A stretch of DNA of 60,000 nucleotides, from contig NW_027437476.1 in the NCBI RefSeq assembly GCF_964204645.1, forward strand, positions 1-60,000, given 5' to 3'. A model generated the notes under the pieces. That model searched no databases. It was not told the origin of the DNA and saw nothing but the letters and a program-made list of their open reading frames with translations. Numbering within the stretch: position 1 is the stretch's first letter; every line of letters starts with the position of its first letter. Positions 13,726 through 60,000 of the stretch are shown piece by piece. The stretch comes from Tubulanus polymorphus. Taxonomy: Eukaryota > Animalia > Nemertea. The position numbers and the translations under genes were made by a program.

Positions 13726-14172
13726 CTACAAATGATTGCAATACATGTATCAGATTTAGTATTCATTGGGGTAACAAACTTAAACATCATTAAACTCATT
13801 GCATCTCCTCCTGCAATCAAGTGTATGATTAGTGGAACGAAGTGTGTGCACTAAGCAATAGCTATATCCCCTTCTACTACTTACTTTAGCCTATCCCTTG
13901 ACTGAAATGCTCCAGGGCACCAGATTGTATTTTTACAAGGAGCAGACTTGTAGGACCGTGTACCCCTCCCAACTTTCGCTATTAAACTACCAGTCCTCTC
14001 ATTCTGGTAAGTATAATTTCATTTTTTGAACCCATAAGTAGGTGCCTGTTTGAATAGTATTATAGGGGTCAGGCCATAAATGTGATCCCCTTCCACTATG
14101 ATCCCTTTCAATTTATGATAGTAACTTCTTTCTGAATCTTTCTTTATCATGATACCTCCTCCAATACCATAC

Positions 14173-24689: not shown

Positions 24690-24900
24690 AACATACATAG
24701 GCCTACATATATACACATACATACATACATAAATACATACACACATACATAAATACTTGGTAAATACATACATACATACACACATACATAAATATATACA
24801 TAAATACTTGGTAACTACATACACGCATACATAAATACATACACACATACATAAATACATACACACATACATAGATACACGCACACGCACACACGTATAT
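24690..24900. repeat. (ATAC)n-type compound microsatellite inside the pogo 3' region
   Basis: acatacatacataaatacatacacac... directly visible. Confidence 0.9.
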
Positions 24901-24959
24901 ACAATACAATAGCAATACAACTTTAAGGCCTCTCTACGTAACAAAACGTAGTAAGCCTA

Positions 24960-27900: not shown

Positions 27901-28697
27901 TTATGACTGTGGTATTGAGTTTCTGTATCTGGATGATTGCTGATAGTCGGAAATTAAAAATACTTCAACAACTCATTAGAATATTGCTGGGCTTAATAAC
28001 TTGGGTTTGATAAGGGCTATTTATAGACCAACAGTTGAAGTATTTAAATGATAGGCTAATTTAGTTCAAAGCCTACCGTGCAACAATTTTTCCGGGGACA
28101 TGAGAAAACTGAACGCCAGTTTCATCGAGATTCCAAATATGCATCGGTTGAGCATTTAGCAATACTTTTGTGGCCGATCTAAAGAACATTCCAACCTTCT
28201 TAACATTCATGCACTGATGTCGGATTGCCGCAGTGCCCTCTGGCTTTCGGAGTGCAACAGTGGGGTTTCTAGTTTTAAAGCCAGCCCAGAACTGGTCACT
28301 CGGGATAATCTAAAAGTAAAATATATATACCAGTATTAATTATAAGGGATAAACAACAACCTTTTAGTGAAAATCGTTGGCCTACCTGTTTAAATGGTGT
28401 CCCCCTTTTTAAGGCGAGATCACCCGCATATTTCAATAGATTTCCCTTTGAAAAACCGTAACCGAGGTCTGCACGGTTTTTCGCGAAATCCGCAAGTTTT
28501 GATTCATCTGCCTCAGACAGATTCGTCGGTCGACCTAGTTTCCTTCCTGCAGGAATTTTCCCACTTATTCGGTCATGTAATGTTGATTTTGGTACGCCAA
28601 AGTTTTTTGCTGCCGATAATATTGACATCCCATTCTGAACAGCCTCAACAGCTTCACCCATTTGCACTTCTGTCCAACGCCGATACACTTTTGACAT
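24960..28697 (-). CDS. Multi-exon pogo transposase (HTH_psq, CENP-B-type HTH, DDE_1 domain, DD35D)
   Basis: [41 protein letters not shown]; WNLDETG; [24 protein letters not shown]; SESGWTKQ; [10 protein letters not shown]...[13 protein letters not shown] (35 residues between D2 and D3); [16 protein letters not shown]. The first five exons join in frame; small downstream exons were not fully verified. Confidence 0.92.
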
Positions 28698-31600: not shown

Positions 31601-32177
31601 TTTGACTGAAATGGTAAAATATTTCAAAATTGAACACAAGGCATGATACAGACAATCAATCATCCAAATCGAATACCCGGTATCTAGATCAAATTTATGA
31701 TAAAACAATGTTGTTGGCCTTCGTGTGAAAAATTAAATCGAGACTCTAAAAGAAAACCTTACTTACGCGGACGCGAAACGGCTCGTGGAATGAGCGGAAT
31801 GAGTGGAGTGGGAGTTCCAATGCAATCGCGTAGTGCGCAACCAATCATGTACCCGTATATTCATAGGCGCTATGCCTAAAACGTATCATGTGAGATAAAC
31901 GCCAGAAGCGGGCAGGCATTCTTTATCACTAGGGGCCTAGATACTGAGTTAATGGCTAGATCTTGTTTTATTCGATCATTAGGAGAAACCCGGCGGAATG
32001 ATCCTTAAGGCCTTTTTGAGGGCACGGATTATGGGAGGATAACAGGGAAAACGCAATTTTTTCATTATTCTATTAATTTTCAATAAAGTATTTTCCTGAC
32101 CGAATCTTGAAAACATCCAAAAATTAGCGAAAATTGTTTTTAAATCAATTCAAATGCTGGGGAAGAGAAGCAACATA

Positions 32178-33190
32178 TATGAAAGGCTGAATCCAAGAAC
32201 ATGTCTATCGCACTTTTGAGCCCAAACGTCTACTTTTACTTAATAGTCACTTGAGAACAATAAGCAATTAACTATATCGGCTACTTTTCCAGTAGTATAC
32301 ATTTCAAAACAGTCACTCTGAAATTGTATTCCTTTCAATTCGGTTGGTTTTCTAAAGTGGCTGTTTGGAATAGTCTACTATTGAAAAGTGACCATGAAAA
32401 CATCTGGTTGCGATAGTGCACACAAGCAGTAGAGGTGACTGTAAAACCACTCGCCTGTAAACAGTGACTTTGTGATAGTAACTCCTACTATAACGGCTGC
32501 TCCAAAACATATCGTTTCTAAAAGTCAGCTATTGAAAAGTGACCATTTTGAGATCGCTTGCCAGATTCCCTGTTATATATACACTGTAGCAACATATGCT
32601 TCAGATTTGCAGTGATACGTGACAATATAAACATACTGAGAAACTCTACTCACGCTGTATAGTTCTATTTAGAGTGACTCAGTTAAGATCTGAAGATATT
32701 GTAGATACTCTTTGAGGATGTGAAAAATAATAAAATAATACGCCAAAATGTACGGTGTTCGAACTTCGCTGAATCGATGAACCAATGATCATTTAAGATA
32801 ATTATCAGTTTTTTCCAACTAAACTCTTTTTCACAAATTGTCGTAAAATAATAACTACTAATATGTGGCACCATATTCGACGACAGAAGTGCATTCAGAG
32901 TAATAACGTTACCAATACTTGAATTCCGATGCGAATGCGGGCTAGAACCAACAAAGGTACCGATTTAAGGTGCAGATATACAGGGAATCCCTATCATAGC
33001 GACCAACACGGTTGTATATCGCTTCCGTGCCGAAAAGTGAATAATTTTCAACCTAAACGACTACAGGACCCGACGAAGTCGAATAAAATACTCTAATCCG
33101 TTAACTGTAGATAAATGAAGAAATTCCACGATAGAATTTTGTATCATAAAATTTACTAAGTTAACATGTTCTTGGATTCAGCCTTTCATA
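32178..33190. mobile_element. Tc1/mariner-type MITE (~1.0 kb)
   Basis: Perfect TIR TATGAAAGGCTGAATCCAAGAACATGT flanked by TA on both sides. Confidence 0.8.
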
Positions 33191-34618
33191 TACTCAGGTC
33201 GAAATTTAGAAAATAATTTCAAATCCAAAATCAGAATTTCAAATCCTACGTTGTAGATTGAGTTAAAGTGAGATCTTAATTAGTCTGAATGTAGGCTAAT
33301 AAGTGGAATGATTCATACCTTTAAAGAATAAATGATACGTGATATTGTGCAAATGTGATATGTGAATCCTTCATATACAGAGTCGATTTGCAAGCTTTAG
33401 ATAATATTTTCTAGAAAGGATTCATGCCACGAGCAATCATCTCAATGACATAAATGCTCGTAGATTCATGTGACAGGTTTGAGGCCTCTGGCAACGGATA
33501 ATGCCAGATTGCCAAGAAAACAAACTTTGAGTAGCCTATAATCAGGTCGCCATTAAGTATCTCAGCAAACATAGGCCTAATGCTTGTTGATTTTATAACA
33601 AATAATAGGTGAGAAGCTTCCTCAGACCAGAGCAACCAGGTTTAACTACCATAAATGATAAAGAGAAACATGAAAATAATCTTAGATATTATTCTAATAT
33701 AGGCCTTTATCTGAAGAGATCGTTTCGCAGATCAAATCTATGTGTATAACATGTCATGATTATTCATAAAATAAAAAAGACAAATTAAGAAAGTACATGT
33801 ATAATATTTCATAAACTTGATTGTTTTGCTATATAGGCCCCGTAACGAGCTGAAAATCGTGCTGTGCACGTTGCGTCCGCATTATTCGGTATATGGTCAA
33901 AATGTCCCCGGGAAAAATTGTCCCCAGAAAAAATGTCCCCAGTCTATCATTACTCACTTGGTAATGTAGTTAATTTCACATCATAATAACTCCAGAGAAC
34001 AAACTTGGTAAAATATTTGATAACAATTTAAACATTTTATGACAAATAATGGCTCTACTATGATTTAATTATATTTGCATTTTAGATTTAAAATGTTCCT
34101 AAATTTGACGTATTAATTGAAGAAACTGTGCATCTACTTTATAACTTTTCATAATTTTTTCTATTAATGATGTGTAATTTAGCAAATGGCGCATTCAATT
34201 CAACAGTAAAATCTTCTTAAATTTGACGTATCATGTAATGAGTTCACGTGTTCTCAATAGGCAAAATTGATTAATGCCAAAGGCCTATAATTCTCATAGT
34301 CACTCAATGAATTCTTTTTTTATGGTTAATGTGCAATTTACTCGGTGTTTTGATGTAGTTGTTTGATGTGAAACTTGCTAAATTTTTCATTGGATAAAAT
34401 TAACCCATCTTCAAGGCATTCAAAACCTCAGAAAGGCAAATATCAATAAAAACCATTCCGACTAAATGACTTTCGAATTCCCGCCTCGATCGATTTGCTG
34501 CTCGTCGAGAAATTCACGATTCACATGTACCACAAAATTCACGAAATCACGCTGATGTTATATCATATATTCACGTGCACCAGTGCCTCTCACTATTATC
34601 AATCGATATTGCATTAGG

Positions 34619-34850
34619 CAGGCGGATCCAGGGGGTATCGGGGGTTTCGGAACACCGTCGAGCTTTGTCCATGCTCCTGGACTATCCCTCAATCTATTAC
34701 AAGTTTAGTATAAAAGTTACTTTGTGTCATATTAGTGAAATATTAAACTTCATTCACATGGCAAAATGTCCCTTTCTTCTCAGTTTTGAGTTCGGCCTAT
34801 TGAGTGCTCTTAATTTGGAACACCCTCGAGAGAGGACCCTGGATCCGCCC
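34619..34850. mobile_element. Small MITE with GGCGGATCCAGGG TIRs
   Basis: ggcggatccaggg ... ccctggatccgcc; related single ends at ~37540, 44712 and 45599. Confidence 0.6.
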
Positions 34851-34859
34851 TTGATAAAT

Positions 34860-35599
34860 CGGTTGTAGGTAAAAATCCCCTGGGTAAAAATCCCCTAGGT
34901 AAAAATCCACAAATATTCAAAGTAGGTAGAAATCCCCACTTGTTGAATTTCAAGGACATTTCAAAGCAAGATGTTTCTCCAATTTTGTTCGTTTGCAATG
35001 AGACTGAAATATGTTTAAACTGTGCAATGAAATCTTTTGTTGCGATAAATTCTTAAGAACATTCTTAGAATAAAATAAATAATTGTTAGAATAAATAAGA
35101 ATAATGAACTTTTTATTTGTAATATCTTAAAATTCGAACTGGAATATTTTGAACTGTGAACTCTTGTTAACTTGTGGTATATTTCAGCTGTGCGATGCCA
35201 TGAATTATTAGAAATAATGTACTTTTAATTTGAACTATTTTAGATTTAAGCTAGTGTAATTTAATTTGAACTATTTTAGATTTAAGCTAGTGTATTTGAA
35301 ATGTGCGATGAACCTTTTCATTCAGTTATGCGATCACTTTAAGTACTAATTGAGTATCAATGAACTGTTAATTTGTAGTGTTTTAATTCAAATAGTTTAA
35401 ACTATAGTTTGTATGCTCATGATATCCTTATGGTGTTCCACAGAATAATATGAATAAATTGGATATATGTATCAATAATATGAATTGATTAACCTAAAGA
35501 TTGTATCTACTTAGACTGCATTCGAAAGGAGGGGGATTTTTACGTACCTACTTCGAAGAATTGGGTATTTTTACCTAGGGGCTTTTTACCGCTAAACCG
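34860..35599. mobile_element. MITE with CGGTT...AACCG ends and ggtaaaaatcccc subterminal repeats
   Basis: Inverted subterminal motifs at both ends; a diverged inverted partial copy lies at ~39831-40240. Confidence 0.6.
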
Positions 35600-38500
35600 A
35601 TATAAATCTTGTCACAAAATCGTTTCACTATTCATTATAGCTAAAATTGTTTCACTGGCCCCCAATGACCCCCACCTGTTTTAGCGTATAAAAATACGTT
35701 CCGGTATAACCTGGCGCGGGCCTGCTGTTGAATGTTAGCAATCTCTATTTCAAAATCGATGATTTCAAAGATCATGTTAGTTCGCTAGATCTACGAGCAC
35801 TGAAACGTTACTCGTGGGCTAGATCAACTTTCATCAATTCTTCCACAAATAAAATGAGTCGCAAAACGAAGACAATTTTCGACAAAACGGCACGATTTAC
35901 TAACATGGCACCCATTTCATAGATTAACCCAGGGCCGGGGTACTCGAGATATTTGTGGATTTTTTTAAAGTCACCTCGGGCCATCATATATGACCTAATA
36001 ATCTTAAGTCGCAATGAAACATTCTATAATATGATCATGAGACAGTAGGCATTAGGTTTAAAATAATGTCATTTTTATGCACGTAGCTTGGTAAAAGGCA
36101 CAGATTATCCAAGGTGAACATTGTGAAACACCACGGCAAATTTGAAATTTTTGAAAACTATTAAAGTTTTTCATAACATAAGAATATACATACATATAAG
36201 AATATATATACATAAGTATCTTATTGACTTTTGCTGTGAAATCAAATTTGGACGGTTTTTTATCCGGGAATTTTACCTGAGGACATTAACCGGGGGATTA
36301 CGTATTAGGCCTACCTGTTATCGATAAAAATATATATCTGAGTTGAAAAATGAGTGTGCGTTTTATTGTTTCATAATTTTTTTTGGAATATGCACATGTC
36401 CTTAATCTTCTAAAATGAATTTACTTTTTATTTCTATAGGCGTTGATGAATATAAAAAACTCATAAACTGAAAAGAAAGATCTTTTCGGTTTATGAGTTT
36501 GCAGAACTTTACTTGTTCTATGATTTAAAGTAAATGACACGGGCGTTTTTAGACCACAAAATTGTATTTCATTCATTCTTCAACAAAAGATCACATGAGG
36601 CCAAATATAAAACTGAAGACTGGCGGACTGTGCTTATACATGTATCGTTTATGGTAGATACTCGTTCCAGATGTTAGCATTTCCCGCCGATTGCCACAAG
36701 GGATAAGAATAGCATTGTAGCCAGCTGAAACCACACACGAAAATCTAAATAGCAGCAGAGCGGAGACCTTCCCGTAGGCCACATGGTGCACTGTAAACAA
36801 CGCTCAAGTTTGACCTATGCCGTATCTGAGACCGTGTACTCTAAAATGCTGAGAGCTCCCGCCGTAGAAACATATTTTATTCTAAAGCCTTTGCAAATTT
36901 TGTCAGTTTTACAACCTGTATAGTATATCCTGTGGTGTGAATATGTCAGCTGATGTTCATGTCAGCATCCAACATCAAAGTGATATTATGATCTTGTGAC
37001 TAAAAATACGTATTTCACTATCTTGATATTCTTATCATAATCGCAAGTTCCAGACGTATTAAAAGAGGAATAATTTCATTCAAATTTTGAAAAATCGAAC
37101 AAAAACTGGTTCTATTGAAAATATGGATTTTCTGTTTAGCGGAAATTATGAGCATTTATGAAATGTAACGCATTAACAAATCTCAGTGTTGTTCACGGCG
37201 TGAAGACCATACTACTATTCTATTTTGGGGGTAGATTTTCCATGGACCCAAACTCTGTGAAAATATGGTGAATAAAGTAGCTTTTTGTAAAACACATATT
37301 TTTCGACCAAACCTTTAAAAACATTCTAGCTGCGCAACCGCGAAATATTTTCTTCGGGCCTGGTTCGCTTAAAATTAAATACCTGGCTTGTTGTCGTGTG
37401 AGAACAATGGTCACGATTTTAGTTATTTACCCCCTAATGATATTGATCGTAAACGATTGGATTTTTAGAGCAACCGGTTAAAATGCCGTCTCAATATTTG
37501 GCCAATACGTTTTGATCTTCGGCATATGTCTATCCACACCAGGGACGGATCCAAACCGTGTCACGGGACGGCCAAAATTGTTTGTGCCCTTCGAAAATCT
37601 ATTTGATTATAAGGTTATTTGGCCCACACGGCCGTTAGAAGCTATGGACAACGCCTGGTTCAGGGGTCATAACATTTGATACGTGACATGTGACGTCTTT
37701 ATTATATATTGATATAGCCGGGCCTCCTGCATGTTCTATCTAGCGAGGACCCCATTATCAAATAGTTAGGCCCGCTAGGCTGTTAGAGGTTGGGCAACAC
37801 AACCCAGATCACAGAGGAAAAAACCATAAATATGGATTCCCGTTTTTTTGTATGCAGTGAAGTTTGTATTTCATGACCAGAATAAAAATTTTTTGCGTAA
37901 ACAATTATATGATTTATTGTATAGTTTTTAAAAATCCTTGTCGACTCGATTCAGCTTGCGACTTAATGAAATACTGAACTTGTAACATGTGCTCTCAAAG
38001 TACGATCTATAGCTATTGTGGGATAGACCTACGAGCAATTGTTAGATAATTGCTCGTAGGATAGACCTTCCGTTTTATATCACTACTCTACTATCATAGA
38101 CCGGTCTAAATTTCGTCGTGTGAACGCGCCTTATCATATTTGATTGTTCGAGGTTCCTGAAATCCCCGATCGGTTGTACTCGATTCTGAATAATGAAAGA
38201 GTAATAAAACAAAGAGCAGAGGCATACGGGATTTTCACGTGGAGTGGGGGTGTTTTTAGGCGGATTTCGCTGCTCGTCGTCCCAAGAAACCTTAAAAATT
38301 AGTCCTATTTTCATGCATTCTGATAATCACGATTCAAAATGCACCTTGTATGCCTACTTTGCAGTAAAGCGTTGAAAGACTGGGTATAGATAATAAAGAA
38401 AGATTTTCAAAAGTTAATCATTTGTTGATTTACGTTAAAACTCAAGTTAGTCTCTTTCGATTTTGGAACCTTCTTCTTCACATGTCATGTTATTGTTACA

Positions 38501-39623
38501 CCTTGGATCAGTAATCATATGGTTACACTGCACATGCACTATATCCGATACAGTTGATCAGCAAGCGTATTAACCGAATTGGTTTACTAGGGAAATGAGA
38601 CACTGTTCGAACATTTATCGTTTTAACGAATTGTTCGTATCATCGTGTTAGTTCACAGTATCAAACTACTTGTATTTTTACTAGTAATTTGTGTACCGAT
38701 ACATTCCACTATGTTATAAGAATTAACAAAATCGTATTTTATTCAATGACAATCATGTTCCTGACGATGACTGTCTTTGTATCCTACAAAGATATGTTTA
38801 ACCGTTCAAATTATTAACAGCTCCTGCGCGTATATATTCGTCTTGAAAGTACATATTTCTATGATGAATCTTATCTTCAATCTTATTTGTATGAAGAAAT
38901 GAAATGTTGTGTAAACCTCATTCATCAATTTGACTTGTTAGATATATGAACGAAATGATGAGATAAAACTGGAAATGATATGGAGAAAAATTTCAACAAT
39001 GTGCCTGGGTAAAAAGGCTTTGTAGCCGACGAATATGGCTATGCGGTGTAGAGCTCTAAAGTTAGTGGATTACATGTGGCTGTTTACTTAGGACGCCATA
39101 CAATTAGGTTTTTATGCGAAATATATTCATTTTCTTGATTCGCGGAAAGTTCGGTGATAAGTCCAGCCCTTGATAGAACGCGTACAAAACGATTTTAGCC
39201 CATTTTTAACACGGAACAAGCTTTTCTGTTCGACTTCCTGTGAATTTTGTCTAGTGGAGGTATATTAAATGTGTATTTAACCGATTTTTTTTTCGAGTAT
39301 CAATTCCTTTTCTGAAGACATAGCAGCGATCTTAGACACAGAATGAATAATGAAAAAATGATTCTCCAAAAAGTTCATCGAGCAGCAATCTCCCGCATAA
39401 TATCCACCAACCCCCTTGATTTTGACGATTTTACTCTACTGTAAATTCTATCATTTATCTTAACTGGGTCAAGGAAGTGTAAGTTTCCGGACTAGGTCAA
39501 CTACGTACGTACCATCTGTTTGGCCGGAGTCTGAATGCGCGCACTTTATTTCGAGTGGTCGAGAAGTCGCACGAAGCAAAATCGGGTAGCAGCTTTTCTT
39601 AAAAGTTCTAATAATCTATCGAG

Positions 39624-42600
39624 ATGTGTAGCAAAAGTGATTCAAATGGATGGACATTTTTGTATGCGGATGGCTTAACGAAAAAGGTCATGTTAAGAAT
39701 CGGAATGCAGGTTGTCGGTCAAGTGAAGAAGTTGCGTTGTGATAAGACCACGAATGACGGATTCATATCGGTAAGTGACTTTAGATTCATTGTCTTAAGA
39801 AATTCACCATGTAAATGAATATGAAAAATTCGGTTAGCGGTAAAAATTCCCAATTCTTCAAATAGGTAAAAATTCCCATTTTTTGACTTAGAGTGTTAGT
39901 AGATACAATCTTAAGGTCAATGTAGTCAAATTATTGATACAATTTAATTCATATTCACATTTACTGTACGGTATAACATGAATATCATGAGCATTCTAAT
40001 TATCGTGCAATTGAAATTAGAAAATACTACAAATTAACAGTTTATCAATACTAAATTAATACTAAAAGTTATCGCACAGCTCAAATATATCGCAAATTGA
40101 AAAAGTGTTCATCGGACTTTACATTACGCTAGGTTGAAATAAAAATAGTTCAAATTAGTAATTCATCGAAGAATTCAAAGTAAAATATACAACAAGTCAA
40201 AAGGATTTCACAGTTCAAAAATATTCGAGGTCAAATCTATAAATACTAGGATAGAACCTGTCCTGGACACGGATTTTATCATGATTGAGTTTGAGTTGAT
40301 TATTTTCTCATCTTGAAAATTGGTCCTGCTTATTGAAATCATAAATTTCGAAATCCACTAATTTAAATACTGGTTTTTCTCCACATAATCAATTATTATC
40401 CAGACGTATCAACTCTACTTGATTTTGGTAAATGTCACTATGTGTCACTCTGTTATCGCCACCCTCTTCAGTCCACTTCACTTAGTTACATAATTTGTTT
40501 TTACTCTGAACTGTTTAGAATTGCTGTGGTTTCCACGGTACCCCTTGGTGTTTTATTGCTTGGTCTGTTTATCTTTATAGTTTTGACACACTGCTTCTAT
40601 TTTAGATCCTGTGAGTTAATATGCTTTGTTACTTGTTTTTCTGGTCATTCCATCTGATGATGGCTGTTAATCAACAGCCGAAACGTTGTGGTTTCATAAT
40701 AATAAATTGAATCGTATAATTTTAAATGCGAAGTGTGGGATTTCTTCATTTTTTATACGTAACGTAATATATAGTGAGTCACTGCTGTATAGGAAAGTTT
40801 CAGTTACCAGGCGCCTTGCCATTTTGAGGCGGTCCCACAGGTCCCGCATTATTGCACATATTTTACAGGGTAACTGACACTTTTTTAAAGATTTTCTACT
40901 ATTCAATACTTTTCTACTATACAATAAGGCTAGGTGATTTCATAATTGGAAAAATCTTTTCAATCTAGTCAGAATTGATGATTTTGATGTTCGCGCACCT
41001 GTTCAGTGTATACATTGCTTCTGCTGAACGCGTGGTACTGTGTCTATTAATAGAACTACGTCACTAAAGTGACGGCTCGGAAATGATGTCTATAGAAATG
41101 AATAGGAAATAAGCTATAAAAGCAAGCAATTCAACAAAAAAAAAGCAATTCAACTTAATTTTATACCTATTTGGCATTCGAATTGAGCCAAAATGCCTCT
41201 TGATTTTGAAAGTCTACATATTAATGATTATAATTAGCTGTTGAACGGACCATATCCGTTCAAACTAAGCGCAAAAATAGGATTTGAATAGCAATCCATG
41301 GCATTTTCTAGTAGACAGCAAGGAACACGGATGTTTAAATCATCGTTTTGTATTATCATTTAGTGATAGTAAGTATGATCATGGTTAGATCTAAGAATAT
41401 TTTCACTTATGAACTGATGAAACTTAGACAGAATTAGCCGCAAGAACAATTTCAATTCCTTTCTTGAAATATACCTCGTATTGGTAGCGGCTTTGGTCAC
41501 AAAATTAGAATATTTCCTCATCCATCCTATTTTAAAACTTAGAAATAATGTTTGTGAAAGATTTGTGATGTATCTATCAAAACTCTTCTGCAGCGTGAAA
41601 CTTTAATCGAAAAACATTATTCCTTTGAATATTTGTTGTAAAGGCTGTAGAAATTTATTAAAATTTTTTGTAGTGTTAGTTTTAAAACTACTTAGTCTTA
41701 AATGACTATGAAAAATAGTAAATAGTAAACGAATATGAATCTATTTATTCTTTAGCGAGATCGAAATCTGTGATCGCTTATAAGACACTTAGTATAGTAT
41801 GCTTGTGGTGCTAAACTATAGGTGAACTATGGAGCAGCAGTAACAGTGCTGAGAGCTTAGCATAGTGTATTAGCTTCATAGCTGCGGATTGAAATCTGCA
41901 TCTTCAATTTGATCGATTTAGCCTATTCAAATTACTCATTGATTCTTTGAAATAGGTTTATCCAATAGACAATAGATCCTTTTGCCTCCCTGGCCAGTTT
42001 CAAAGCTGTAAAACAATCTGGCATTGAGATATAACACGCAAACACACGCAGTTTCCTCAAAATTCAACGCATGACGCTATTTCTCAGCTGTCCGGTTAAT
42101 GACGTTGCAGCGCGCCCCTGCTGATTTAGCCGACGCTGAACAGTTAGCAACGTAAACAACGAAATGAGCTCAAAAATCTTGTTACAAAATCACAAATTGC
42201 GCGTAAACTAAACATTTTGGAACAGAACGGTTGAAGATGAGTGTATAGATCAATAGAATACATCATATTTTGAAATAAAAAAAGTGTCAGTTACCCTTTA
42301 ACATTTTCTAAAGTAAAACCTTTAGCGCGATTAATTGTCGTCCATCCCTCTTTTGACACAAAATTTAAACTCATGAATCGTTAGAAAGGTGACAATTTCT
42401 ATTTTCCGATGGTGTTTATTTAATTTTTCTCGGCTGCAACAATCGAACACAGTTACAGTTAAGATATGTCACTTTTAGGGAGGCACCTAAAAAAATTGGT
42501 AGTTTTGTGTCGTTGGCTGAATGAAAATAGAAATGGTCACCATGCATTCTGACGATTCATAAATTGAAATTTTGTGCGTAAAGCCCGCCGCACACGGCAC

Positions 42601-45600: not shown

Positions 45601-48600
45601 GGCGCAGATCCAGGATTTTTCCCAGGAGGGGAAAAATGTTAATGTTAAACTGCCGACTAAAATCTCTAATCATAGGGGCCTATTCGGCATATTGTTTGGC
45701 CAAACATAAGATGATATGGTACCATCGGAGCCATCGGATATTTTAAGCTGGTTATAGGTTTTTATGATAGGTGGGTCGTTTAGGTCGCCCTTAGTCATCA
45801 TTGGCGAATGCGCGACTCATTTGAGCTACTAAACTACTATTAGCAGCGACCGTCAGCGAGACCCCGATATGTTGTCAGTTGCATCTATGGGTAATCAGAC
45901 TGAATTACTCCAAGGTTGCATTGGCCCGAGCATGTTTACAACACTAGCCGCGATCACACAAGTGTTTTTGGGCCGGGCCACCCGAGCCAAATTCTAGCAC
46001 GAGACAAATGATTGCGTTTGAATTGCAACTGGTACCGGAAAAAACCCCACTTCGCTTTGTTCGAGCATTGTTTTAGTATCGATTGAATGGTTTGCGTGTG
46101 AACGCACTCTCTAATTAGGCACGGGCCAAATCGTCTCCGAGTGATCGCGGCTAATGTCAGCGACGAAAAATACCAGTGGCGAGTTGCGCACTAATGAGCA
46201 TGGCGTCTGAACGACATCACTCGTTGCTGAATGCACGGGGTTTTTGTCGACCGAGCGCTTCTGCGTCGCGATCGCTCCAAGGCTGACCTACCCCGGGTAT
46301 ATGACCTATATGACCTCTAAATAGAATAGGTTTAAATGCAACATTGCAACAAGCGTTTCAATGCTTGAAACAATAAATTTTCAATATCAAAATCACTTAT
46401 AAATAATTAGTGTGGATGTCAAATAAAAAACTGAATATTTTTGACGCTTATGCTTCGTTGTATGAATACGCAGAATTCCTTTTTCTAGGCATCGCTCCCT
46501 CACTAACTGAAGAACAGCCCGAGTCATCTGTTTATGGTAAATTATATTCCATTAATATCGACCCAAGCAGAAGCACAGTTTTATCTGCACTTAACACGAA
46601 AATGTCTTAATGTTTTAGATTTTGGACACGATATTCCAGAACATTTTACAAGTAAGTAGAGTATGATGGATGCTTTAGAAGCTTCATTAATGCAATCCCT
46701 TTAGCATTCAAACATACCATATTCAACAATTAAGATTAATCAATCCATAACGATTAAATTTTAAAATATTTCCTTTATAATTCCTCAATTTTTAATTTCC
46801 GTTATAGGTCAATCAGTTGAATCAGCGAATGAAACGAGTGAAAGTGAGTACCGGTAATTGTAAAATGAAAGCAGAATAATGACGCCTAATATGTTTTATA
46901 TGTAATGGGTTTATCAAATTACTTGAATTATCATATGAATAACATGTTTCCTGCCCACAGGTCAAGAAATCGAACCTCAGACATCGCGTGAGTTACTAGC
47001 AAGTACGTTATATTTAAAATTATTTTTGAATTGAAAAATAATCCATATGCCATCTAAAAGATTACCTGAAACCACCTTCAAAATAAATAGATAGTATATG
47101 TAGGAATATCAAATGAGCATGATTTATCTAATATCACCTGAAACATTGTAGGAACGCGTTTGCTGAAAGATGATACTATGAAATTCTTCATAGGTGAGCT
47201 TAAAAGTTATCCTGAAAAACGAGATCTCTAGATTCCCCTTTGTACGATGGTTGGGTAATTGAAATCCCTCCCGGTTGTGCAAACTGCTCTTGAGACAATA
47301 ACGTCAATTTCTATGTGTCTTAATTCGAGCTAATTTTAATGATCATTTACGAAAAATAACATCTTGTGATATTTCGAAAGACGAATAACTCGCGCCGATA
47401 AACCTCATTAAGAAATTTTATCTGACCAACTGTAGGAACTCAGCCAGTACCTGCGTCAAAAATTCGACAGACAGAATGGTGCCGTTCAGTGCGGGAATTG
47501 AACGGCGATCATGTTTCTTATCTCGAAAAACAGTTTCTCGAGAATCCCGCATTCTATACAATAATGTTGGTGCGGCAGGATGGAGCGGGAGAATTCGAGG
47601 TTATCGGAGGAAATCACACTCTGGCGGCGCTAAACAGAGTTCTATTAAAAGAAGGTAAGATGATTTCTGATCCCTGTCGTGATGACGTAAAAATTGAATT
47701 ATTGCAACCAAGTCCCATTTATTCTTTTCAGATCTAGGAGATAAACGAAAGGTTTATGAGACGCCGATATGCAGCGTATACTCCGCCCAGATGCCGGATG
47801 ATTTAGCGAGATTTCTGGCTGCCGACCATAATCTGGCACACTCCCGGATACTTGACACTAAGTATACCGACTTGGTTCGGTCAGCCAGAATCGTTCTCCT
47901 TCAACTCGAAGGAAAATCTGACTTCGGGGAAGAAATCGCGGCTCGAAAAGAGATAATTCAGAGATGGAAAGCTTCTCTAGAAGTTATGTTTGGTCTCAAT
48001 GTAAGTTTTCAAATACTTGTATTAGAATAAAACACTCTAATCCGTCTAAACTATAGAGATAAGTGGAGAAGTTCCCCAATAGAGTAGTATGATAGGTTTA
48101 GTATATTGCATTAATGTGACTTGTATAGTTTGGACGATTTAAAATGGTTCTTATAAACAGGTATCAGTTAAAATGATCCTTCCAATCTAAATTTGCTTTA
48201 TCTATCAGAGCCGAGAAATGTGGGGTCTTAAGTTTAGTAAAGTATATATAGGTGTCACTAAACCTAAGAACCCCTAAACCCAACACCTAAGAGTAAGGGG
48301 GTCTTATTACAACGAATCCACAACGTTTCGGCTTTTGACTAACAGCCATAATCAGATGGAATGAGATTATCATCCACCTGACTATGGCTGTTAGTCAAAA
48401 GCCGAAACGGTGTGATCTCGTTGTAATAATTGCCATCGTGAATCTAGAATTCTATTATGTGTGACTTCTTTGATTATTTCAAATACTTGAGAATAATGGT
48501 ACGTAAGTGAAACTAAAAGAGTCAAGTCGTTGTGATTTGTGGTTTGAACCGTCGATATAGCACTCGGCAGTGTTGCTTTTGGCAGATCGTTTCCCGCTAA

Positions 48601-51600
48601 TGGAACTGTATTTTTTGGAATGAAACGAAACACTACAGAGTTTTTGCACAACGTTATTTAGACCGGTCTAAATTTGATCCGGTCCAATTTAGACCCGACC
48701 AAGCGTTCACACCGGCAAAAATTCCGTTCCAAATTGGCCCGGTCCATTTTAGACCGATCTAATTTTGACCACAAAGAGTGAACCAGGTCCGGTCCAAATT
48801 TTGGTACGGATTAAATCTCTAGCCGCGTTCACACGACAACTAGTTAGACCGGTCTAAATGAGTCAGTACCTGGGGCCAGTTGCATAGTCGTGGCTTAGAC
48901 TTAAGACCAGTCTAAGACCAACTTAGTTCTATAGCCAATCTAACAAATTAAGATCAGTCTTAAGATTTAAGACCACTTTTAGACTTAAGTCACGACTGTG
49001 CAACTGGGCCCTGGTCCGGTCCAAATTTAGACCGGACCAAATTTTGGTTAGCGTTCACACGGCGTTTTGACACGCGTTGATAAAATCGCTTGTCTCTGGG
49101 CCCACAATATGTTGCCATCTGCTAGATAATTAACTGGGCCTGGATGAAGTCTTACTTCCAGATTCCAAGTAGAGCAAGACATTCTTCATTTGACGAATTC
49201 GATTCTCTCTCAGTTTTAGACATTTTTGATTCAGACGCACTCATTTGTCCTGGACACAAATTTGGTCCGCCCAAGTCCGATGTTTTTGGTCGGGCCAAGT
49301 TTGACCCTCAAGCAGACACACGCCAAAAAGGGTACCCGTCTAAACAGTTTTCCCGGGCCAATTTGGCCGGTGTAAAAATGCCAAAAATGCTCGTGTGATC
49401 GCGGCCATAAACTGGTATCACACTCAAACCAATATTTTCTTTTAGCGCAAGCAACTCAACGATCGGTACCGTATCGTCATTAAAGCAGCACAAATGCCCA
49501 CGTGTGCATGGCTGCTATGGGAAAAAATGATCGAAGGATGGTCGAAGGGGCATATCAAAGGCCAAAAATATGAAACAATCGACAGGAATGGCGAAAAAAG
49601 GAAAACATTGGTACCTTTTGGGTCAAGGAAGGTCAAATCTTTGGTATCATTACCTGTACCGGATATGATGGCTATCATGAAGGATATTACCAACGGAAAA
49701 ATCGACCAAAAAGACATTATTCCATTATGCAGTAGTAGAGCCAGGTTAGTTTGCTATTTATCTGTTATATATATAATGTCTATAAATCATATTTTAATTT
49801 ATTTATTCATTCCATTTACAGGGTTACTAAGACTACAGCTGCTAAGACTAGGGAAGTAAGTATAACAATTTAGTAGCTTCTCATTTAAAAATTAACCAAA
49901 CATGTCTGATATGGATTCTCATACTGATATATTTCATTTGTTTACAGCCTGCCGTAGAACGAGAGAAGAATGAACAAGCTGAAAATGAGGTACAGACACT
50001 TACAGCTCATATAGCTCTTTTTTCGTATATGTCACATTTCTTACAAATGATGAATATGTTTCATGAGTTATTATCAAGAGGGAGATTTTGTTTCAGCAAA
50101 ACAGAGCAAATTTAGATCGACGAGTCACCGGAGAGGTAATTTATGATTGTAAAAATATTATCACTTCATAAGAACTTAAAGCATGGACGATTAGTACAGA
50201 AGGAGTGGATTCAGTTGGGTTCTAGGAGCCCTCCCCCTCCCCGATTTTTGCCCAAAAGAAGATTATTGTATATTAGTGGTTTGTCTTAGGGCCTTAGGTT
50301 TATCTGAGGCCCACTTAACTTAAGTTATGTTTGAGGATGATAAACCTTTGACTGTGAACAGTACGTAATCTCTCAGTTAACTCATTTTGATTGATAGTCA
50401 TCAGTGTTCAATCAACATTCTTTTATTGGAAGTCATGATCAAAGGAATTTTCTCATTTCTATTCGGTTTCAGTTGGAAGTTGACCAGTCATCATTTGCAG
50501 AAGATATGGATATGGAAGACGACCCTAGTGTCTTCATAGTAAGTATATGACTATTGCACGGGCACGTTGAGCATTTTTGAGGTTTATTTCTTTGTCAGTC
50601 ATCGGCTGCCTAGGCGCATTTTCATTAAGATTTTCTGAGAAAAAATTTAGTGCATTATTTCTCAGCACGTATAAGATGGGCTGGCTGGCTGGTGAATCAA
50701 GGCACACGCGTCCTCTATGTATTGAGATGCCTTTTTGCTCTGGTTGCGTGGGTGATAAAAACTTAATTTATAAGAGTAAAATCAGAATTCATTAATATAC
50801 TTTTTTCTTTTCAGGAAAAAGAACACGCATCAATCAGCCAAGAGGTATGGAATATGTCATTTACGTAGATATTGTTGTTACAATTTTTCATTGCTTGTCT
50901 AAAAGCTTACACCCATTCTATGCGACCAACTAAGTTTTTTTTCAAAATCAACATCGATTGTTACAATTACTGATATTGTAGGTCAATGAATTGTTGACCT
51001 CTATATGTTATCTACTTCTACTAGCTTCAGAGTACCTTTATTGATGGCAATAAACGAAGACGTCCGCGCCACGATTTAGAGGTTAGTTATCATTCAAAAA
51101 AGTTTAAAATGGGAAGCGTCCTAGGAACATTGAAAACATTTTTTTAAAAATCCTATTTTCGAAAAATATCCAACGTCTGAATTAAACAAAAATAGAATTT
51201 TTGAATAAAATACCCAGGGCCTGGTGTTATAGACTGGTATTAACTTTTAACCGAGAGGTTAACTCAATTGAAAATGAATTGAGTTAGCTCTGGGTAAAAG
51301 ATAAATACAATTCTATAAAGCCGGCCCCAGGATTTTTTAATCAAACAATGATATTTTCCAGGACGCTTCCGTAAGGGTTAAACGTATTTACATTATATTG
51401 TATAATCACTTGTGTTTTTTGCACTTGTAACTCATTAATGTTGATAAACCAATGATTACACGGATACGTGTTAGAACAGTTCTTTTTATATATCCAATCA
51501 ACCATTAGTCATGTTATATGTAACTCAAGTGCATATTTCTTTAGATATCCCATGTTCTACCTACGAAGAGTTTACGCTTACAGGCAAGTAAATCTTAGTA

Positions 51601-54600: not shown

Positions 54601-55727
54601 CTGTTTAGGATACCTGCGCTTTATAAATGACATTATAATTATTGTTATTATTATTACTATTATCATTATTATAAGTTCATAGATATATACTGCAGTATTT
54701 GACAGATAATATGCCTGTTATACTGCTCCTCAGCCCAAGTTACTAACACAAACAATAGACAGACGATCATCATGATGATCTATCTAAAAAAATTAGTTGT
54801 GACTCCATTTTACGTGTTCAAGCTCAAATTCATGTGAAATATAAATTTTTCGTGAAAGATTAAACATACCCCAGCATAGCTCTTATTGGTAAAAATGAAA
54901 TGATCCTTTATAATTTACACAATTTACCGAAAAACTATGGGGCTAACATTAAAATGCATATGGTTTGAAATTGATATTTTCCAGCGAAAACGGCAGACAT
55001 ATCGCTGATTTCCCCAAATTTTAGTGATGAACTGCCATTAGTTGACATTCCCATGCAGACGAAGCAAACGGTAGGTTTTATAATACAGCCCCGGAAAAAT
55101 CCCAAGTTCTGTTATTTTGTGTTAAAGAATATTTTTGGACTACATTTTTCCATCACTAAATAGAATGTTCCCACCATCATGCAGGGACTTAGTCTTCATT
55201 TATGAAATTCACGCATCTTAATTGAAATACTGAATAACATAATAACTTGCTAGTTCTCGGAAACTATAAATAGCTGCAATACGCATGCGTTCGACATGCA
55301 CATATAAAAATATGCTGCTACTGCACTCTGGGTTTTGAAGGGTTTATGGGAATTAGCTATGTATATATCATTAAGATTTAGATTTATTGGATTATTTATT
55401 AGATTTATTATTCTCTTTTAGTTCGATGAAGGCGACGTCCTCCTTGTCGACTGGACAAGATTTGGAATCTATTTGGCAGCAGTTGATTCCACAAAAAATC
55501 TCATTTCCTGCCAAAAGCATATATGCAAAAGACCGTCGCATAACTTCAGTGACGCCTTAGAAACAAGAGTCCTCAACAAAGAGGACGTGCAAAGTATGAA
55601 GTCGGTCGACCTGAAGATGGTCATTTGCAAGGTGCCGAATGCCAGGCGAGAGGACGACGCAATAGTTGGTGTAGATTACATTTGGGTACACGCCATGGTT
55701 AAAAAATACACCTCCCAACATTCTTAA
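39624..55727 (+). CDS. Multi-exon protein: ParB/Srx-like domain, acidic micro-exons, coiled coil, C-terminal Tudor/PWWP-like barrel
   Basis: Exon 47436-47654: VRELNGDHVSYLEKQFLENP...EFEVIGGNHTLAALNRV. Exon 47732-48000: CSVYSAQMPDDLARFLAADHN. Exon 49446-49744 is in frame. Coiled-coil exons at 52.3-53.8 kb (LVTELREKLATTERRLKDIE). Last exon 55422-55727: FDEGDVLLVDWTRFGIYLAAV. Putative first exon 39624-39770 (ATG...|GTAAGT, phase 0) fits the phase-0 acceptor at 45373; the 5' end is less certain. Confidence 0.7.
40650..40691 (+). ncRNA. Minimal type I hammerhead ribozyme (Penelope-type)
   Basis: CCAU-CUGAUGA-U-GGCUGUU aauc AACAGCC-GAAA-CG-UU-GUGG: intact core, stem II, CCAU/GUGG stem I, followed by AATAAA. 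Confidence 0.75.
40867..42297. mobile_element. Kolobok-like non-autonomous element (1.43 kb)
   Basis: TIR AGGGTAACTGACACTTTTTT at both ends; flanks TTAC / TTAA; second copy at 23472. Confidence 0.8.
42932..43801 (-). CDS. Two-exon 257 aa protein: winged-helix-like N-terminus + SET8/KMT5A-like SET methyltransferase domain
   Basis: Exon 43801-43583 (AGG|GTATGT) joins 43486-42932 (ttacttcag|CAA) in phase 0. SET motifs KGHG, GEFICEYKG, YLNHSK.NANC, DIPPNHELLHNYGDR..LPQW. No Cys-rich pre/post-SET region, as in SET8. Confidence 0.88.
44010..44655. mobile_element. MITE-like repeat with poly-C/poly-G subterminal motifs
   Basis: ggtaaaaatccc motifs inverted at both ends; ~44430-44655 is homologous to ~36060-36325. 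Confidence 0.5.
48318..48414. ncRNA. Back-to-back pair of degenerate hammerhead motifs (inverted repeat)
   Basis: Minus strand: CCAU-CUGAUUA-UGGCUGUUAGUCAAAAGCC-GAAACGUUGUGG. Plus strand: CCAC-CUGACUA-UGGCUGUUAGUCAAAAGCC-GAAACGG. Both deviate from the CUGANGA core. Confidence 0.6.
48655..49075. mobile_element. gcgttcacac/accggtctaaa repeat-rich MITE containing a nested Harbinger-like MITE (48873-49010)
   Basis: The inner element has GG(G/C)CCAGTTGCA TIRs and a CTG duplication. The outer motif also occurs at ~38100. Confidence 0.6.
51218..52065. mobile_element. Two ~110 bp copies of a Harbinger-like MITE (51218-51327 and 51957-52065)
   Basis: Shared ttatagactggtattaactttaacc...gttaactcaattg core, GGCC-like ends, CAG duplication around the first copy. 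Confidence 0.65.
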
Positions 55728-55740
55728 TAATTATTTTTCT

Positions 55741-58700
55741 GTTTAGATTACTTAGCGCTTAATGATAATCATTTATTCGTTCTATTATTTGATATATACG
55801 ATCTATCGCTACTAGTTTATAGAAGCTTCATCGGGTCGCTTCTTTAGACTAGCAGAAAAAACTCGTACTTGCCAAATAGATAAAGAAAACCCTCAAAGTG
55901 CTGCCTGTCAATTCAATAGATATTGAGTTAAGACTTAATTTTGAAATATGTTTAAGCGATTTCTATAGAAAAACAAATCAATTTGCTTGTCTCGAATTTG
56001 ACAGATAAATTTGAGTGAAAAAATGTTTTCCACTTTGTACTAAGTTCGATTTGCAGATTATCGAATTTCGACATTAACCGTTGCATCTTAATATCCGACT
56101 TTAAGAGGACCTATCTCGCGATATTGTCCAAAGATTTGACGTCTCCGGGGTCCTGGGATTAAATCCTTGCCTCGGCCGGTGTAAGTTTCATAGTCTAGTA
56201 TTCTAACTGGTGTGATAAGAAATTCTGGTCCACGGTGACATTCAGGTTTCTGTTTCGCTGATAGGAAGTTTATTGGGCGCCAGAGTCTTACATTAGGTGT
56301 ACTGATAATCTTGTCTTTGATTTTTTAGATGAACAGTTATTTGTGTATTTAATTCCTAATCTGAACATTTCTTACTAGTACATTGAAACTCAGTCATTCG
56401 TTATCATATTCCGACAATGGGGCTGATTTGACATTTCATAGGATCACTGAAAACATACTATAATTAGAATTGCCTGTGCGAAAATTTCAACAAATAAGTT
56501 CCGTGATTGCCAGGAAAATGGGTTTAGTTTACTTAGCGCTTAATAATAAACATTATTCTTTCAATTAAGTGCTATACGATATTTTGAAATGATTAGAATG
56601 ATATAAAGTCTACATATATTTATAGGGAAAATTAAGAAGAAGCAAGCCGTTTTAACCAGAATAAATTGACCGAAATTGATTAACCAAAAGAATTGATTTT
56701 AAACACGTAGTACTCTGTAGGTAGTCTACATTTATTTGATATATACGATCTATCGCTACTAGTTTATAGAAGCTTCATCGGGTCGCTTCTTTAGACTAGC
56801 AGAAAAAACTCGTACTTGCCAAATAGATAAAGAAAACCCTCAAAGTGCTGCCTGTCAATTCAATAGATATTGAGTTAAGACTTAATTTTGAAATATGTTT
56901 AAGCGATTTCTATAGAAAAACAAATCAATTTGCTTGTCTCGAATTTGACAGATAAATTTGAGTGAAAAAATGTTTTCCACTTTGTACTAAGTTCGATTTG
57001 CAGATTATCGAATTTCGACATTAACTGTTGCATCTTAATATCCGACTTTAAGAGGACCTATCTCGCGATATTGTCCAAAGATTTGACGTCTCCGGGGTCC
57101 TGGGATTAAATCCTTGCCTCGGCCGGTGTAAGTTTCATAGTCTAGTATTCTAACTGGTGAGATAAGAAATTCTGGTCCACAGTGACATTCAGGTTTCTGT
57201 TTCGCTGATAGGAAGTTTATTGGGCGCCAGAGTCTTACATTAGGTGTACTGATAATCTTGTCTTTGATTTTTTAGATGAACAGTTATTTGTGTATTTAAT
57301 TCCTAATCTGAACATTTCTTACTAGTACATTGTAACTCAGTCATTCGTTATCATATTCCGACAATGGGGCTGATTTGACATTTCATAGAATCACTGAAAA
57401 CATACCATAATTAGAATTGTCTGTGCGAAAATTTCAACAAATAAGTTCCGTGATTGCCAGGAAAATAGGTTTAGATTAGTTAGCGCTTAATAATAAACAT
57501 TATTCGTTCAATTAAGTGCTATACGATATTTTGAAATGATTAGAATGATATAAAGTCTACATATATTTATAGGTAAAATTAAGAAGAAGCAAGCCGTTTT
57601 AACCAGAATAAATTGACCGAAATTCATTAACCAAAAGAATTGACGTTAAACAGGTAGTACTCTGTAGGTAGTCTACATTTATTTGATATATACGATCTAT
57701 CGCTACTAGTTTATAGAAGCTTCATCGGGTCGCTTCTTTAGACTAGCAGAAAAATCTCGTACTTGCCAAATAGATAAAGAAAACCCTCAGAGTGCTGCCT
57801 GTTTTATGTCAATTCAATAGATATTGAGTTAAGACTTTTTGAAATATGTTTAAGCGATTTATAGAAAAACAAATGAATTTGCTTGTCTCGAATTTGACAG
57901 AGAAATTAGAGTGAAAAAATGTTTTCCTCTTTGTACTAAGTTCGATTTGCAGAATATCGAATTTCGACAATAACCGTTGCGTCTTAAAGTGACTTTAAGA
58001 GGACTTATCTCGCGATACTGCCCAAAGATCTTACATTAGGTGTACTGATAATCTTGTCTTAGATTTTTTCAGATGAACAGTTATTTGTGTATTTTAAATT
58101 CTTAATTTGAATTTTTCTTACTAGTACATTGTAACTCAAGTCATTTGTTATCATATTCCGACATGGGCTGATTTGAAATTTCATAGAATTTCTGAAAATA
58201 TACTATAAATAGAATTGACTGTGCGGCAATTTCAACAAATTAATGCCGTGGTTGTTAGGAAAAAATGATATTGGTGGAAGCTTCATCTAAATAAAGTAAA
58301 TCTTCAGAGAACTACCAGTTTTACCTCCATTCAAGTAAAATAAGTAGAAACTTACTAGATTTTAGTTACGTACTTAATTCTCCCCTTAATAAGCTGCGTT
58401 CGAATTTGATGGATACACGGTGAATCCGCTATTTTCTATCGAACCATAATCATCCGCAAAAAATCATCATGTTTAATGCCTGCATCATGTTTTATAACAT
58501 TTATCATTTCTCTCATTCCGCCGTCATTAGTAGACGGCCTTCTTATAATTATTTTGTTGAATAATGTGAGACCCGTTTGTATAACTTGGATGAGTAAATT
58601 AAATTAACACAACATTTCAATAATTCCGTGTATAGGAAACTGAAAACATATTTTGTAACCACGATAAATTGCACAGTTGCAATGTTTTATGTATAGTTGA

Positions 58701-60000
58701 GTCAATTTCTATATTTTGTACACGTTAATTTGATCCCGTATGTACATGTCTTTTATTCTGTCCAGCATTATGCAGTTGTTATATACTATTGTATCTGTTA
58801 ATAAAGCCAATGAGAGTGAGAGTATTTTTCTAATCTATGCCATAATCATAATGCATTCAGATTATATATACGGTGACACTTTTCCATGTATATGAACTTG
58901 TTGTTAATTTTGTATGATCTTTTTACACCTGGTGTGTACATATTTTATGAAATAAAGACTTATTACGATAACCACTTTCGTTGTAAATATTCAGCGTTGT
59001 TAGATACAACGCGTGTTTAAAAGTCATGTGTTCATCAATAAATATTATGAATATCAAGAATTATGTAAAATTAATCGAACATTTGCGCTTATCAAATTGA
59101 TAGAAATTTCTAATGGTCAATAAATACATTTTTGATACACGTTGAATACTCTCAAATTATCATTGATGTTTGAACATATGCGATTTCGCACATATTGCAG
59201 TGACATTCCTCATCTTATCGTCAAAACGGATTTCTTCAAGAGGCACTCTTTTCACCATCAAGATTGGGATTAACGCTTATTCGAGGAGCTTATCGATTCA
59301 CCGCCAAAATTACGATTTCACGCTTGGGTGCCCCTAGTTTTAGTGCCAAAACAACGATTTCACACTTTTTTGAGGGACGGCCCTCGTTTTAGTGCAATAA
59401 CAGTGATTTCCCACTTTTTGGAGGGACGCCCCTTGTTTTAGTGCAATAACAGTCATTTCACACTTTTTTGGGGGACGCTCCTTGTTTTAGTGCCAAAACC
59501 GTGATTTCCCACTTTTTGGAGGGACGCCCCTCGTTTTAGGGCAATAACAGTCATTTCACACTTTTTTGAGGGACGCTCCTCGTTTTAGTGCCAAAACCGT
59601 GATTTCCCACTTTTTTGAGGGACGCCCCTCGTTTTAGTGCCAAAGCTGTAGTTTCCCACTTTTTGAGGGACGCTCCTCGTTTTAGTGCCAAAGCCGTAAT
59701 TTCCCACTTTTTGAGGGACGTTCCTCGTTTTAGTGTTAAAACCGTGATTTCCCACTTTTTTGAGGGACGCTCCTCGTTTTAGTGCCAAAACCGTAATTTC
59801 CCACTTTTTGAGGGACGCTCCTCGTTTTAGTGTTAAAACCGCGATTTCCCACTTTTTTGAGGGACGCCCCTCGTTTTAGTGCCAAAACCGTGATTTCCCA
59901 CTTTTTTGAGGGACGATCCTCGTTTTAGTGCCAAAGCCGTAATTTCCCACTTTTTGAGGAACGATCCTCGTTTTAGTGTTAAAACCGCGATTTCCCACTT
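55741..60000 (-). repeat. Right compound terminal inverted repeat (runs off the window)
   Basis: ~2.7 inverted 947 bp units (marker at 55822, 56769, 57716), inverted unique segment (~58250-59335) and inverted 48-49 bp array (~59335-60000). Confidence 0.92.

Follow-up and report, generated by a model that had tools for sequence, protein, structure and literature searches.

Until now, algae have been the only known hosts of ParB-like accessory genes of transposons, which are fused there to DNA methyltransferases (PMC12477816). In the 21.5-kb Ectocarpus element Sola1-1_Ec32, a ParB-like protein of this fused kind is encoded opposite the transposase, and the algal protein has been proposed to bind the DNA of its own element; similar cases in green and red algae are cited in the relevant part of the same source (PMC12477816, refs 50, 51). 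A recent survey gives sulfiredoxin (Srx) as the usual eukaryotic member of the ParB-CTPase fold, which is otherwise regarded as essentially prokaryotic (10.1101/2025.10.10.680097). In this report, we describe a multi-exon gene with a putative ParB/Srx-like N-terminal domain in a 60,000-nucleotide stretch of the genome of the ribbon worm Tubulanus polymorphus (contig NW_027437476.1, positions 1 to 60,000, hereafter the window), where it lies within a giant element bounded by terminal inverted repeats (TIRs) together with a gene for a DUF7869 protein. On balance, we favour the reading that this is a ParB-like, conserved accessory gene, one of the pair of genes that a giant DNA transposon of the DUF7869 type has conserved.

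The original prediction had placed, at positions 47436-49744, an animal ParB/Srx-like protein carried as the cargo of a transposon. On translation, the motif strings on which it relied were recovered exactly, in frame and on the + strand, and the two ends of the span proved to be the splice acceptor of exon 1 (ctgtag/GA at 47436) and the donor of exon 3 (AG/gttagt at 49744). With these three exons begins a gene that comprises about 16 exons and some 575 codons and extends over about 8.6 kb to position 55727, so that the flagged span covers only its initial 2.3 kb. Exon 1 (47436..47654, in frame 47438-47653, + strand), defined by translation and homology, encodes the N-terminal half of the ParB/Srx-like domain and bears R-E-L-N-G-D-H-V-S-Y-L from 47492 as well as EFEVIGGNHTLAAL, which includes GGNHT at 47606-47620. 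Exon 2 (47732..48000, in frame 47734-48000, + strand), defined by translation and by a tblastn match in the mussel Mytilus, contributes the strand CSVY (47770-47781), the helix LARFLAADHN (47803-47832) and further helices, and exon 3 (49446..49744, + strand), placed by a weak colinear Mytilus match, encodes a helical region past the ParB-like domain. The reading frames of the three exons join across intron 1 (77 nt, gtaag...ttttcag) and intron 2 (1.4 kb, gtaagt...ttttag, with small foldback repeats). Because about 16 in-frame exons with canonical splice sites are accompanied by a colinear, single-frame match in Mytilus and by purifying selection on the Mytilus exon, we regard it as confirmed at the sequence level that the stretch is the 5' part of a real multi-exon gene and not a product of chance. 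The animal host was borne out as well, since window positions 660-22988, reversed, equal a 22.3-kb locus of T. polymorphus, a palaeonemertean ribbon worm (GCA_964204645.2, CAXNRA020000047.1).

For the likeness to ParB, the Tubulanus queries were single exons, and a contiguous mussel exon together with public mussel proteins stood in for the whole domain. When exon 1 was scanned against the PHROG library (38,880 families), two of its three matches were to families labelled 'ParB-like partition protein', namely PHROG 723 (E=7e-4, residues 35-68 to profile positions 41-76) and PHROG 16545 (E=0.39, residues 11-66), and the best match still stands at about 0.01 after correction for twelve exon-by-library scans. 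An unbiased library scan thus returned a ParB-family profile in the register of the N-domain, if weakly. In tblastn searches of phages and plasmids, exon 1 gave E-values of 0.7 to 9, which is chance level, and despite these values the long alignments, compared also by BLASTP, land on the N-domains of annotated ParBs: residues 17-60 align with gp54 of Vibrio phage 2.096.O, a protein with an HTH_ParB domain that matches PHROG 1033 at 2e-65, and residues 4-72 align with the archaeal plasmid ParB WP_302083621.1 of Salinibaculum sp. KK48. In these alignments, GGNHT faces DGHHR and SGNKR, with Thr at the position of the GxxR arginine, exactly the replacement of the canonical arginine that had been read from the sequence beforehand. 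Comparison of exon 1 with an 11-sequence alignment of ParB N-domains by hhalign gave a probability of 85% (P=6e-6) over 64 columns; the score of 34.0 compares with 10.9 +/- 2.4 (maximum 25.4) for shuffled exon 1, and it was reached by 0 of 300 shuffles. With a two-phylum profile, the probability was 56% (P=1e-4) and the alignment reached through the next strand. Weak but convergent, the exon 1 evidence moderately supports the ParB/Srx assignment, and we judge it likely that the N-domain adopts this fold.

We also searched, exon by exon with tblastn, the 10-kb flanks of other DUF7869 genes (64 kb in all). Exons 1 and 2 match, colinearly, one frame of one long exon of Mytilus galloprovincialis (E=0.006 and 1e-5; reciprocal sum E about 3e-7), and this exon sits in a 555-residue gene that is the divergent neighbour of a DUF7869 gene. 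The shared motifs are V/I-P-A, R..R.L...H...L.KQF.EN and GGNHT, followed by C.(V/L)Y...PD(D/E)LA..L...HN and (V/I).(Q/R)WK; exon 3 is weakly colinear through (R/K)Y(R/K)IV(I/L)K.A, and exon 11 shares REKLATT with a colinear coiled-coil open reading frame (ORF) of the Mytilus gene (E=0.12). The 218-residue ORF of the mussel exon clusters with CAG2212293.1 of M. edulis (410 aa) and CAC5396504.1 of M. coruscus. In M. edulis, M. galloprovincialis, M. coruscus and M. trossulus alike, the gene stands head to head with a DUF7869 gene, the first coding exons lying about 180 bp apart in the first two species. The proposal to look for homologues with GGNH motifs beside DUF7869 genes of other genomes was therefore rewarded in Mytilus, and because the GGNH homologue pairs there with a DUF7869 gene, head to head and in a second phylum, the word 'cargo' in its passenger sense is disfavoured. 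Purifying selection acts on the ParB-like domain in its Mytilus copy: between M. edulis and M. coruscus, the nonsynonymous rate (dN) is 0.032, the synonymous rate (dS) 0.22 and dN/dS 0.14 over 183 clean codons, a frameshifted stretch of M. coruscus being left out. That stretch, at about 14130-14260 of the M. coruscus locus, includes two stops after ...EEFHNN, where CAC5396504.1 ends, and then returns to frame; it fits copies of an element that were once under selection and have since been decaying. A locus-to-locus comparison within Mytilus was too patchy for the ends of the element to be placed. Tandem repeats that are related to each other lie next to the gene pair, in M. trossulus on the side of the DUF7869 gene (about 5030-7700 of the reverse-complemented locus) and in M. 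edulis on the ParB-like side (18700-20040). On a separate metagenome contig (ERZ25039482 contig_23439, 45.5 kb), an intron-less DUF7869 gene lies among compact gene calls with a 2OG-Fe(II) oxygenase gene nearby, and no relative of the ParB-like gene was found within 10 kb of it.

The placement of the gene inside a transposon also held, since it shares a TIR-bounded element with the DUF7869 gene. The element is about 57 kb long, with inverted arms of about 5.8 kb that are made up, on the outside, of arrayed 49-bp repeats. The left arm (3129..8960) consists of a 25-unit array (3129-4345), a unique part and about three copies of a repeat of about 942 bp (5936-8960); the right arm (55785..60000) starts with about two copies of the latter (55785-57802), reaches its 49-bp array at 59333 and is cut by the end of the window, beyond which the right end of the element lies. 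The arms are 87-100% identical, and 97-100% identical outside the 49-bp arrays. The 25 units on the left share the conserved blocks CGTCCCTC, AAAAAGTG, GAAAT and CACTAAAAC, and the copies of the 942-bp repeat are 97-99% identical to one another. A DDE-like gene with a DUF7869 domain, annotated LOC141914665, occupies 10380..13762 on the - strand (Pfam DUF7869, E=5e-40), so that a DUF7869 gene between long TIRs, as expected of a DUF7869-type TIR element, is present here, its role as a transposase being putative. The DUF7869 and ParB-like genes are divergent and 33 kb apart, and each runs toward, and ends beside, its nearest TIR arm, the stop of the ParB-like gene lying 58 bp before the right one. 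None of the papers searched mentions DUF7869.

Beyond the three flagged exons, the remainder of the ParB-like gene was read on by eye as thirteen exons (4-16) with pyrimidine-rich AG acceptors and GT(A/T)(A/T)G-type donors; exons 4-15, together with a possible exon 0, are tentative, and support from outside the locus concerns exon 11 only. As exon 1 has no in-frame ATG ahead of its motifs, the tentative first coding exon, exon 0 (47152..47193, + strand; acceptor cattgtag/, donor /gtgagc), would supply one at 47178 and read M-K-F-F-I-(G), and its phase-1 end matches the 2 bases with which exon 1 starts; it was found by eye alone and has no homologue or transcript support. Exons 4-15 are short and nearly all of phase 0, and they were assigned, on the + strand, from splice sites and a maintained frame. 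Exon 4 (49822-49855), exon 5 (49948-49989), exon 6 (50097-50135), exon 7 (50473-50538), exon 8 (50815-50844) and exon 9 (51031-51081), the last with a basic patch, KRRRPRH, that resembles a nuclear localization signal (NLS), are followed by exon 10 (51755-51799), and a charged linker is encoded between exon 3 and the coiled-coil-like exons. The latter, exon 11 (52346-52420, with the REKLATT motif common to the Mytilus gene), exon 12 (52682-52744) and exon 13 (53081-53125), are charged, rich in Leu and Glu and coiled-coil-like by eye, in keeping with the coiled coil that had been predicted, and they lie downstream of the flagged exons. Exons 14 (53782-53830) and 15 (54985-55070) lead to the last, exon 16 (55422..55727, + strand, acceptor ctcttttag/), whose 101 codons (55422-55724) encode the C-terminal domain and end at a TAA stop (55725-55727); this exon gave no match in Pfam or PDB and has no detectable relatives. 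Intron 2 contains, at 48320-48415 and 48650-49060, a near-perfect hairpin with arms of about 36 nt and several copies of a GGTCCGGTCCAAATTT-type motif in both orientations, which look like small foldback or miniature inverted-repeat transposable element (MITE) insertions.

Other sequences lie between the two genes. At least 18.8 kb of the 33 kb is a nested TIR-bounded insertion (23488..42283) whose inverted arms (23488-23852 versus 41933-42283, ends of 365 bp) are 94-95% identical and which contains pogo-like remnants, namely ORFs at 28299-28697(-), with HTH_psq, and at 27595-27900(-), with a weak DDE_1 match, as well as a further inverted pair at 35321-35546 and 39863-40084. Just outside this insertion and between the core genes, a single-exon SET-domain ORF (42935-43483, - strand; Pfam SET, E=4e-15) may be genuine cargo or a separate insertion. 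The public LOC141914665 model covers only about 10660-12988, and upstream of it a 220-codon open frame (13103-13762, - strand) is conserved beside Mytilus DUF7869 genes (tblastn 3e-14, 3e-8); because of this conservation, the public model is probably truncated at its 5' end. Rfam and tRNA scans were empty.

Several results weigh against a ParB/Srx fold, and they would suit an account in which the gene is real and is the conserved partner of the transposase, with an N-domain of new fold whose short strand-Gly-Gly-helix likeness to ParB arose by convergence or chance. Searches of Pfam (E<=1) and NCBIfam (E<=10) with exons 1-3 gave no match, including to PF02195 ParBc and TIGR00180, the PADLOC models matched none of the scanned exons, and in PDB the profile search was empty and phmmer returned nothing real. 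No Srx match was found in the Pfam or PDB searches. Exon 2 alone yields no family or profile match, hhalign included, and exon 3 no family match; the contiguous Mytilus exon lacks a Pfam (E<=10) or PHROG match and alone is not significant against the ParB alignment, though it is aligned in register. The hhalign ParB alignment was seeded from one of the top matches of exon 1 itself, which makes its P-value post hoc. The defining GxxR arginine (Box II, or P-motif, of the kind GERR, DGHHR or GCHR) is absent from both phyla, with Thr in Tubulanus (GGNHT-L) and in Mytilus (GGNHT-R). For Box III (ENxxR type) the picture is mixed, since both phyla keep a (D/E)-H-N helix after the C-x-(V/L)-Y strand, with no Arg at +3. 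Neither HTH_ParB nor any other helix-turn-helix (HTH) was detected in exons 2, 3, 16 or the Mytilus exon, HTH_ParB being present in the Vibrio phage comparator, and no ParA gene was seen. AlphaFold2 models were of low confidence, with a predicted local distance difference test score (pLDDT) of 59.7 when exon 1 was modelled by itself and 38.5 when the domain from Mytilus was (4-row alignment); the exon 1 model, at this low confidence, has a strand where ParB has its first helix, and its Foldseek comparison, with no match at E<=0.001 and a list of SH2 and other noise, carries no weight. Metagenome and viral contigs searched with the Mytilus domain or exon 1 yielded no relatives, and the two-phylum alignment offered no stretch of sufficient conservation for such a search. 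Against the new-fold account, several independent matches, each of them weak, all point to ParB N-domains, with one register shared along about 65 residues, and none of the shuffled sequences attains the real hhalign score, so that we hold this account to be somewhat unlikely. Of the ParB/Srx domain as first proposed, what stands is the exon 1 evidence from PHROG, ParB N-domain alignments and hhalign, whereas nothing significant came from the profile search of the PDB, from Pfam ParBc or from the Mytilus homologue by itself.

The role assigned to the gene must likewise be weighed. Since the four mussel loci represent a single lineage, the pairing has been seen in two phyla. Around the Mytilus pairs, a search for TIRs within 26 kb turned up small, nested inverted repeats and nothing else. 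Neither the public annotation nor the protein collections contain the gene, which has no transcript evidence; a word search of the protein collection with exon 2, and with exon 1 within its stop-free ORF, gave zero candidates, and in an exact look-up 0 of ten window ORFs were present. It might be that the protein is ParB-like and acts chiefly as a transcriptional regulator, of the KorB or phage ParB-type repressor kind, at a divergent promoter shared with the transposase, rather than in the synapsis of ends. The closest phage ParB-like proteins are annotated as transcriptional regulators, KorB-domain repressors or DNA-binding proteins, KorB being a ParB-family clamp that serves gene silencing (PMC11790492), and the Mytilus genes start within about 180 bp of one another; however, these phage annotations are themselves only depositors' labels, no HTH was detected in the exons named above, and the Tubulanus promoters are 33 kb apart, which leaves this role rather unlikely. 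A passenger gene, of host or foreign origin, captured by one element and without a role in transposition would agree with its intron-rich, host-like structure and with the unrelated SET-domain ORF and pogo remnants that the same TIRs enclose. Such a passenger is very unlikely, because the DUF7869 pairing recurs, likewise divergent, in another phylum, the gene lies directly beside a TIR, where a terminal gene would be, and the protein searches brought up no unlinked homologue. Equally low is the probability that we give to a nuclease that nicks or cuts DNA for excision or for repair-mediated copying of the element. The His and Asn kept in both phyla (GGNH and the HN helix) could be catalytic, some matches are annotated 'ParB-like nuclease domain protein', and in Kolobok elements, known from the same animal phyla, a nuclease is encoded by a second gene (PMC9587614); on the other side, there is no similarity to characterised nuclease active sites, the annotation label is historical and the two-phylum alignment shows no conserved acidic motif for metal binding.

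A few candidates were considered and set aside. An assignment of GGNH...HN to the His-Me/HNH class, prompted by KolobokP (PMC9587614), was supported by no profile. The sole phmmer match of exon 2 among 1.84 billion representatives, a bacterial Big_12 repeat protein, was judged spurious, and a tblastn match in Salmonella phage SPFM10 was rejected because it falls on the wrong strand of a gene. The gp7 protein of Methylophilales phage Melnitz-3 was dropped as a relative, since it aligns at chance level, belongs to no Pfam or PHROG family and shows no likeness to ParB by hhalign; this 427-residue protein (1090-2373 of its locus) contains GKNHTCAA and is encoded one gene downstream of an HhaI-type methylase.

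Returning to the ParB-like accessory gene that we favour, its product would begin with an N-terminal ParB/Srx-like domain of about 120 residues, of the ParB-CTPase fold, with Thr (GGNHT) standing in for the arginine of Box II, and would continue through a conserved helical region, the NLS-like basic patch and the coiled coil to an orphan C-terminal part of 100 residues. We infer that the protein serves its element as an accessory DNA-organising factor rather than riding along as a passenger. It would enter the nucleus and recognise repeated sites of the element, candidates being the 25-unit 49-bp arrays or the 942-bp TIR repeats, and it would multimerise through the coiled coil and may help the transposase to find, pair or condense the distant ends, and/or control the promoter region shared by the divergent genes. 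As both phyla have Thr where ParB has its phosphate-binding arginine, any nucleotide cycle would probably depart from that of the canonical ParB CTP clamp, or there may be none. Bridging of the ends, which the original prediction had envisaged, might be one outcome of such a protein. The most specific version, in which a nucleotide-gated clamp of the ParB type with the Arg-to-Thr change loads on the 25-unit 49-bp arrays of the terminal repeats, spreads or bridges via the coiled coil and, in an assembly like a partition complex, unites for the DUF7869 transposase two ends that lie over 50 kb from each other, we consider quite unlikely; if true, it would be the first ParB-style DNA-organising machine in metazoan chromatin.

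Transposons with two genes, one of them for a DNA-binding partner of the transposase, are familiar from PIF/Harbinger elements with their Myb-like protein and from En/Spm, whose TnpA acts on subterminal repeats, and the SopB protein of the F plasmid binds the tandem array sopC. These systems have no sequence relation to the Tubulanus gene; they resemble its element in combining a transposase with a second gene or in having repeat arrays as possible multimeric platforms, and that the ParB-like protein binds the 49-bp units is a hypothesis. Srx, a small single-domain ATP-dependent enzyme that keeps the motif arginine (GCHR), is present in animals and shares the putative superfamily fold, and it differs in context and architecture. 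The ParB/KorB-like proteins of phages and plasmids (PHROG 723, 16545 and 1033) show, along residues 3-72 of exon 1, the same order of elements, V-P...R-(D/E)-(L/I)...H-V helix, hydrophobic strand and G-rich turn, continuing alike with the strand x-(F/Y)-x-V-I-x-G, the helix L-A-A-L and a further strand, and they too are encoded on mobile elements. In contrast to them, the Tubulanus gene is eukaryotic and intron-rich, has Thr for the GxxR arginine, falls below detection by Pfam PF02195 and, in place of an HTH_ParB or C-terminal dimerisation domain, which went undetected, has a coiled coil and an orphan C-terminal domain.

A partner gene conserved between a nemertean and mussels would show the DUF7869 elements, which are uncharacterised, to be built around two genes and would give a candidate factor for the handling of very large transposons with kilobase-long, repeat-rich ends. 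It would also offer a natural Arg-to-Thr variant, that is, a ParB fold without the canonical phosphate contact, and would flag a gene missed by public annotation. The closest parallel in arrangement is the algal type, likewise a giant (>20 kb) TIR transposon with a ParB-like gene on the strand opposite the transposase, the orientation also seen in Mytilus. Against the algal proteins, which were compared by description only, the gene reported here differs in its animal host, its altered P-motif and its coiled-coil architecture, and the transposase is of the DUF7869 type, the kinship of which with that of Sola1 may or may not exist. Unlike the algal type, no methyltransferase domain was found in CAG2212293.1 or in the scanned Tubulanus exons, among which exons 4-10, 13 and 14 were not included. 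ParB-like transposon genes are thus already known from algae, and what is new here is an animal host, a DUF7869 element, no methyltransferase seen, an altered motif and a coiled coil.

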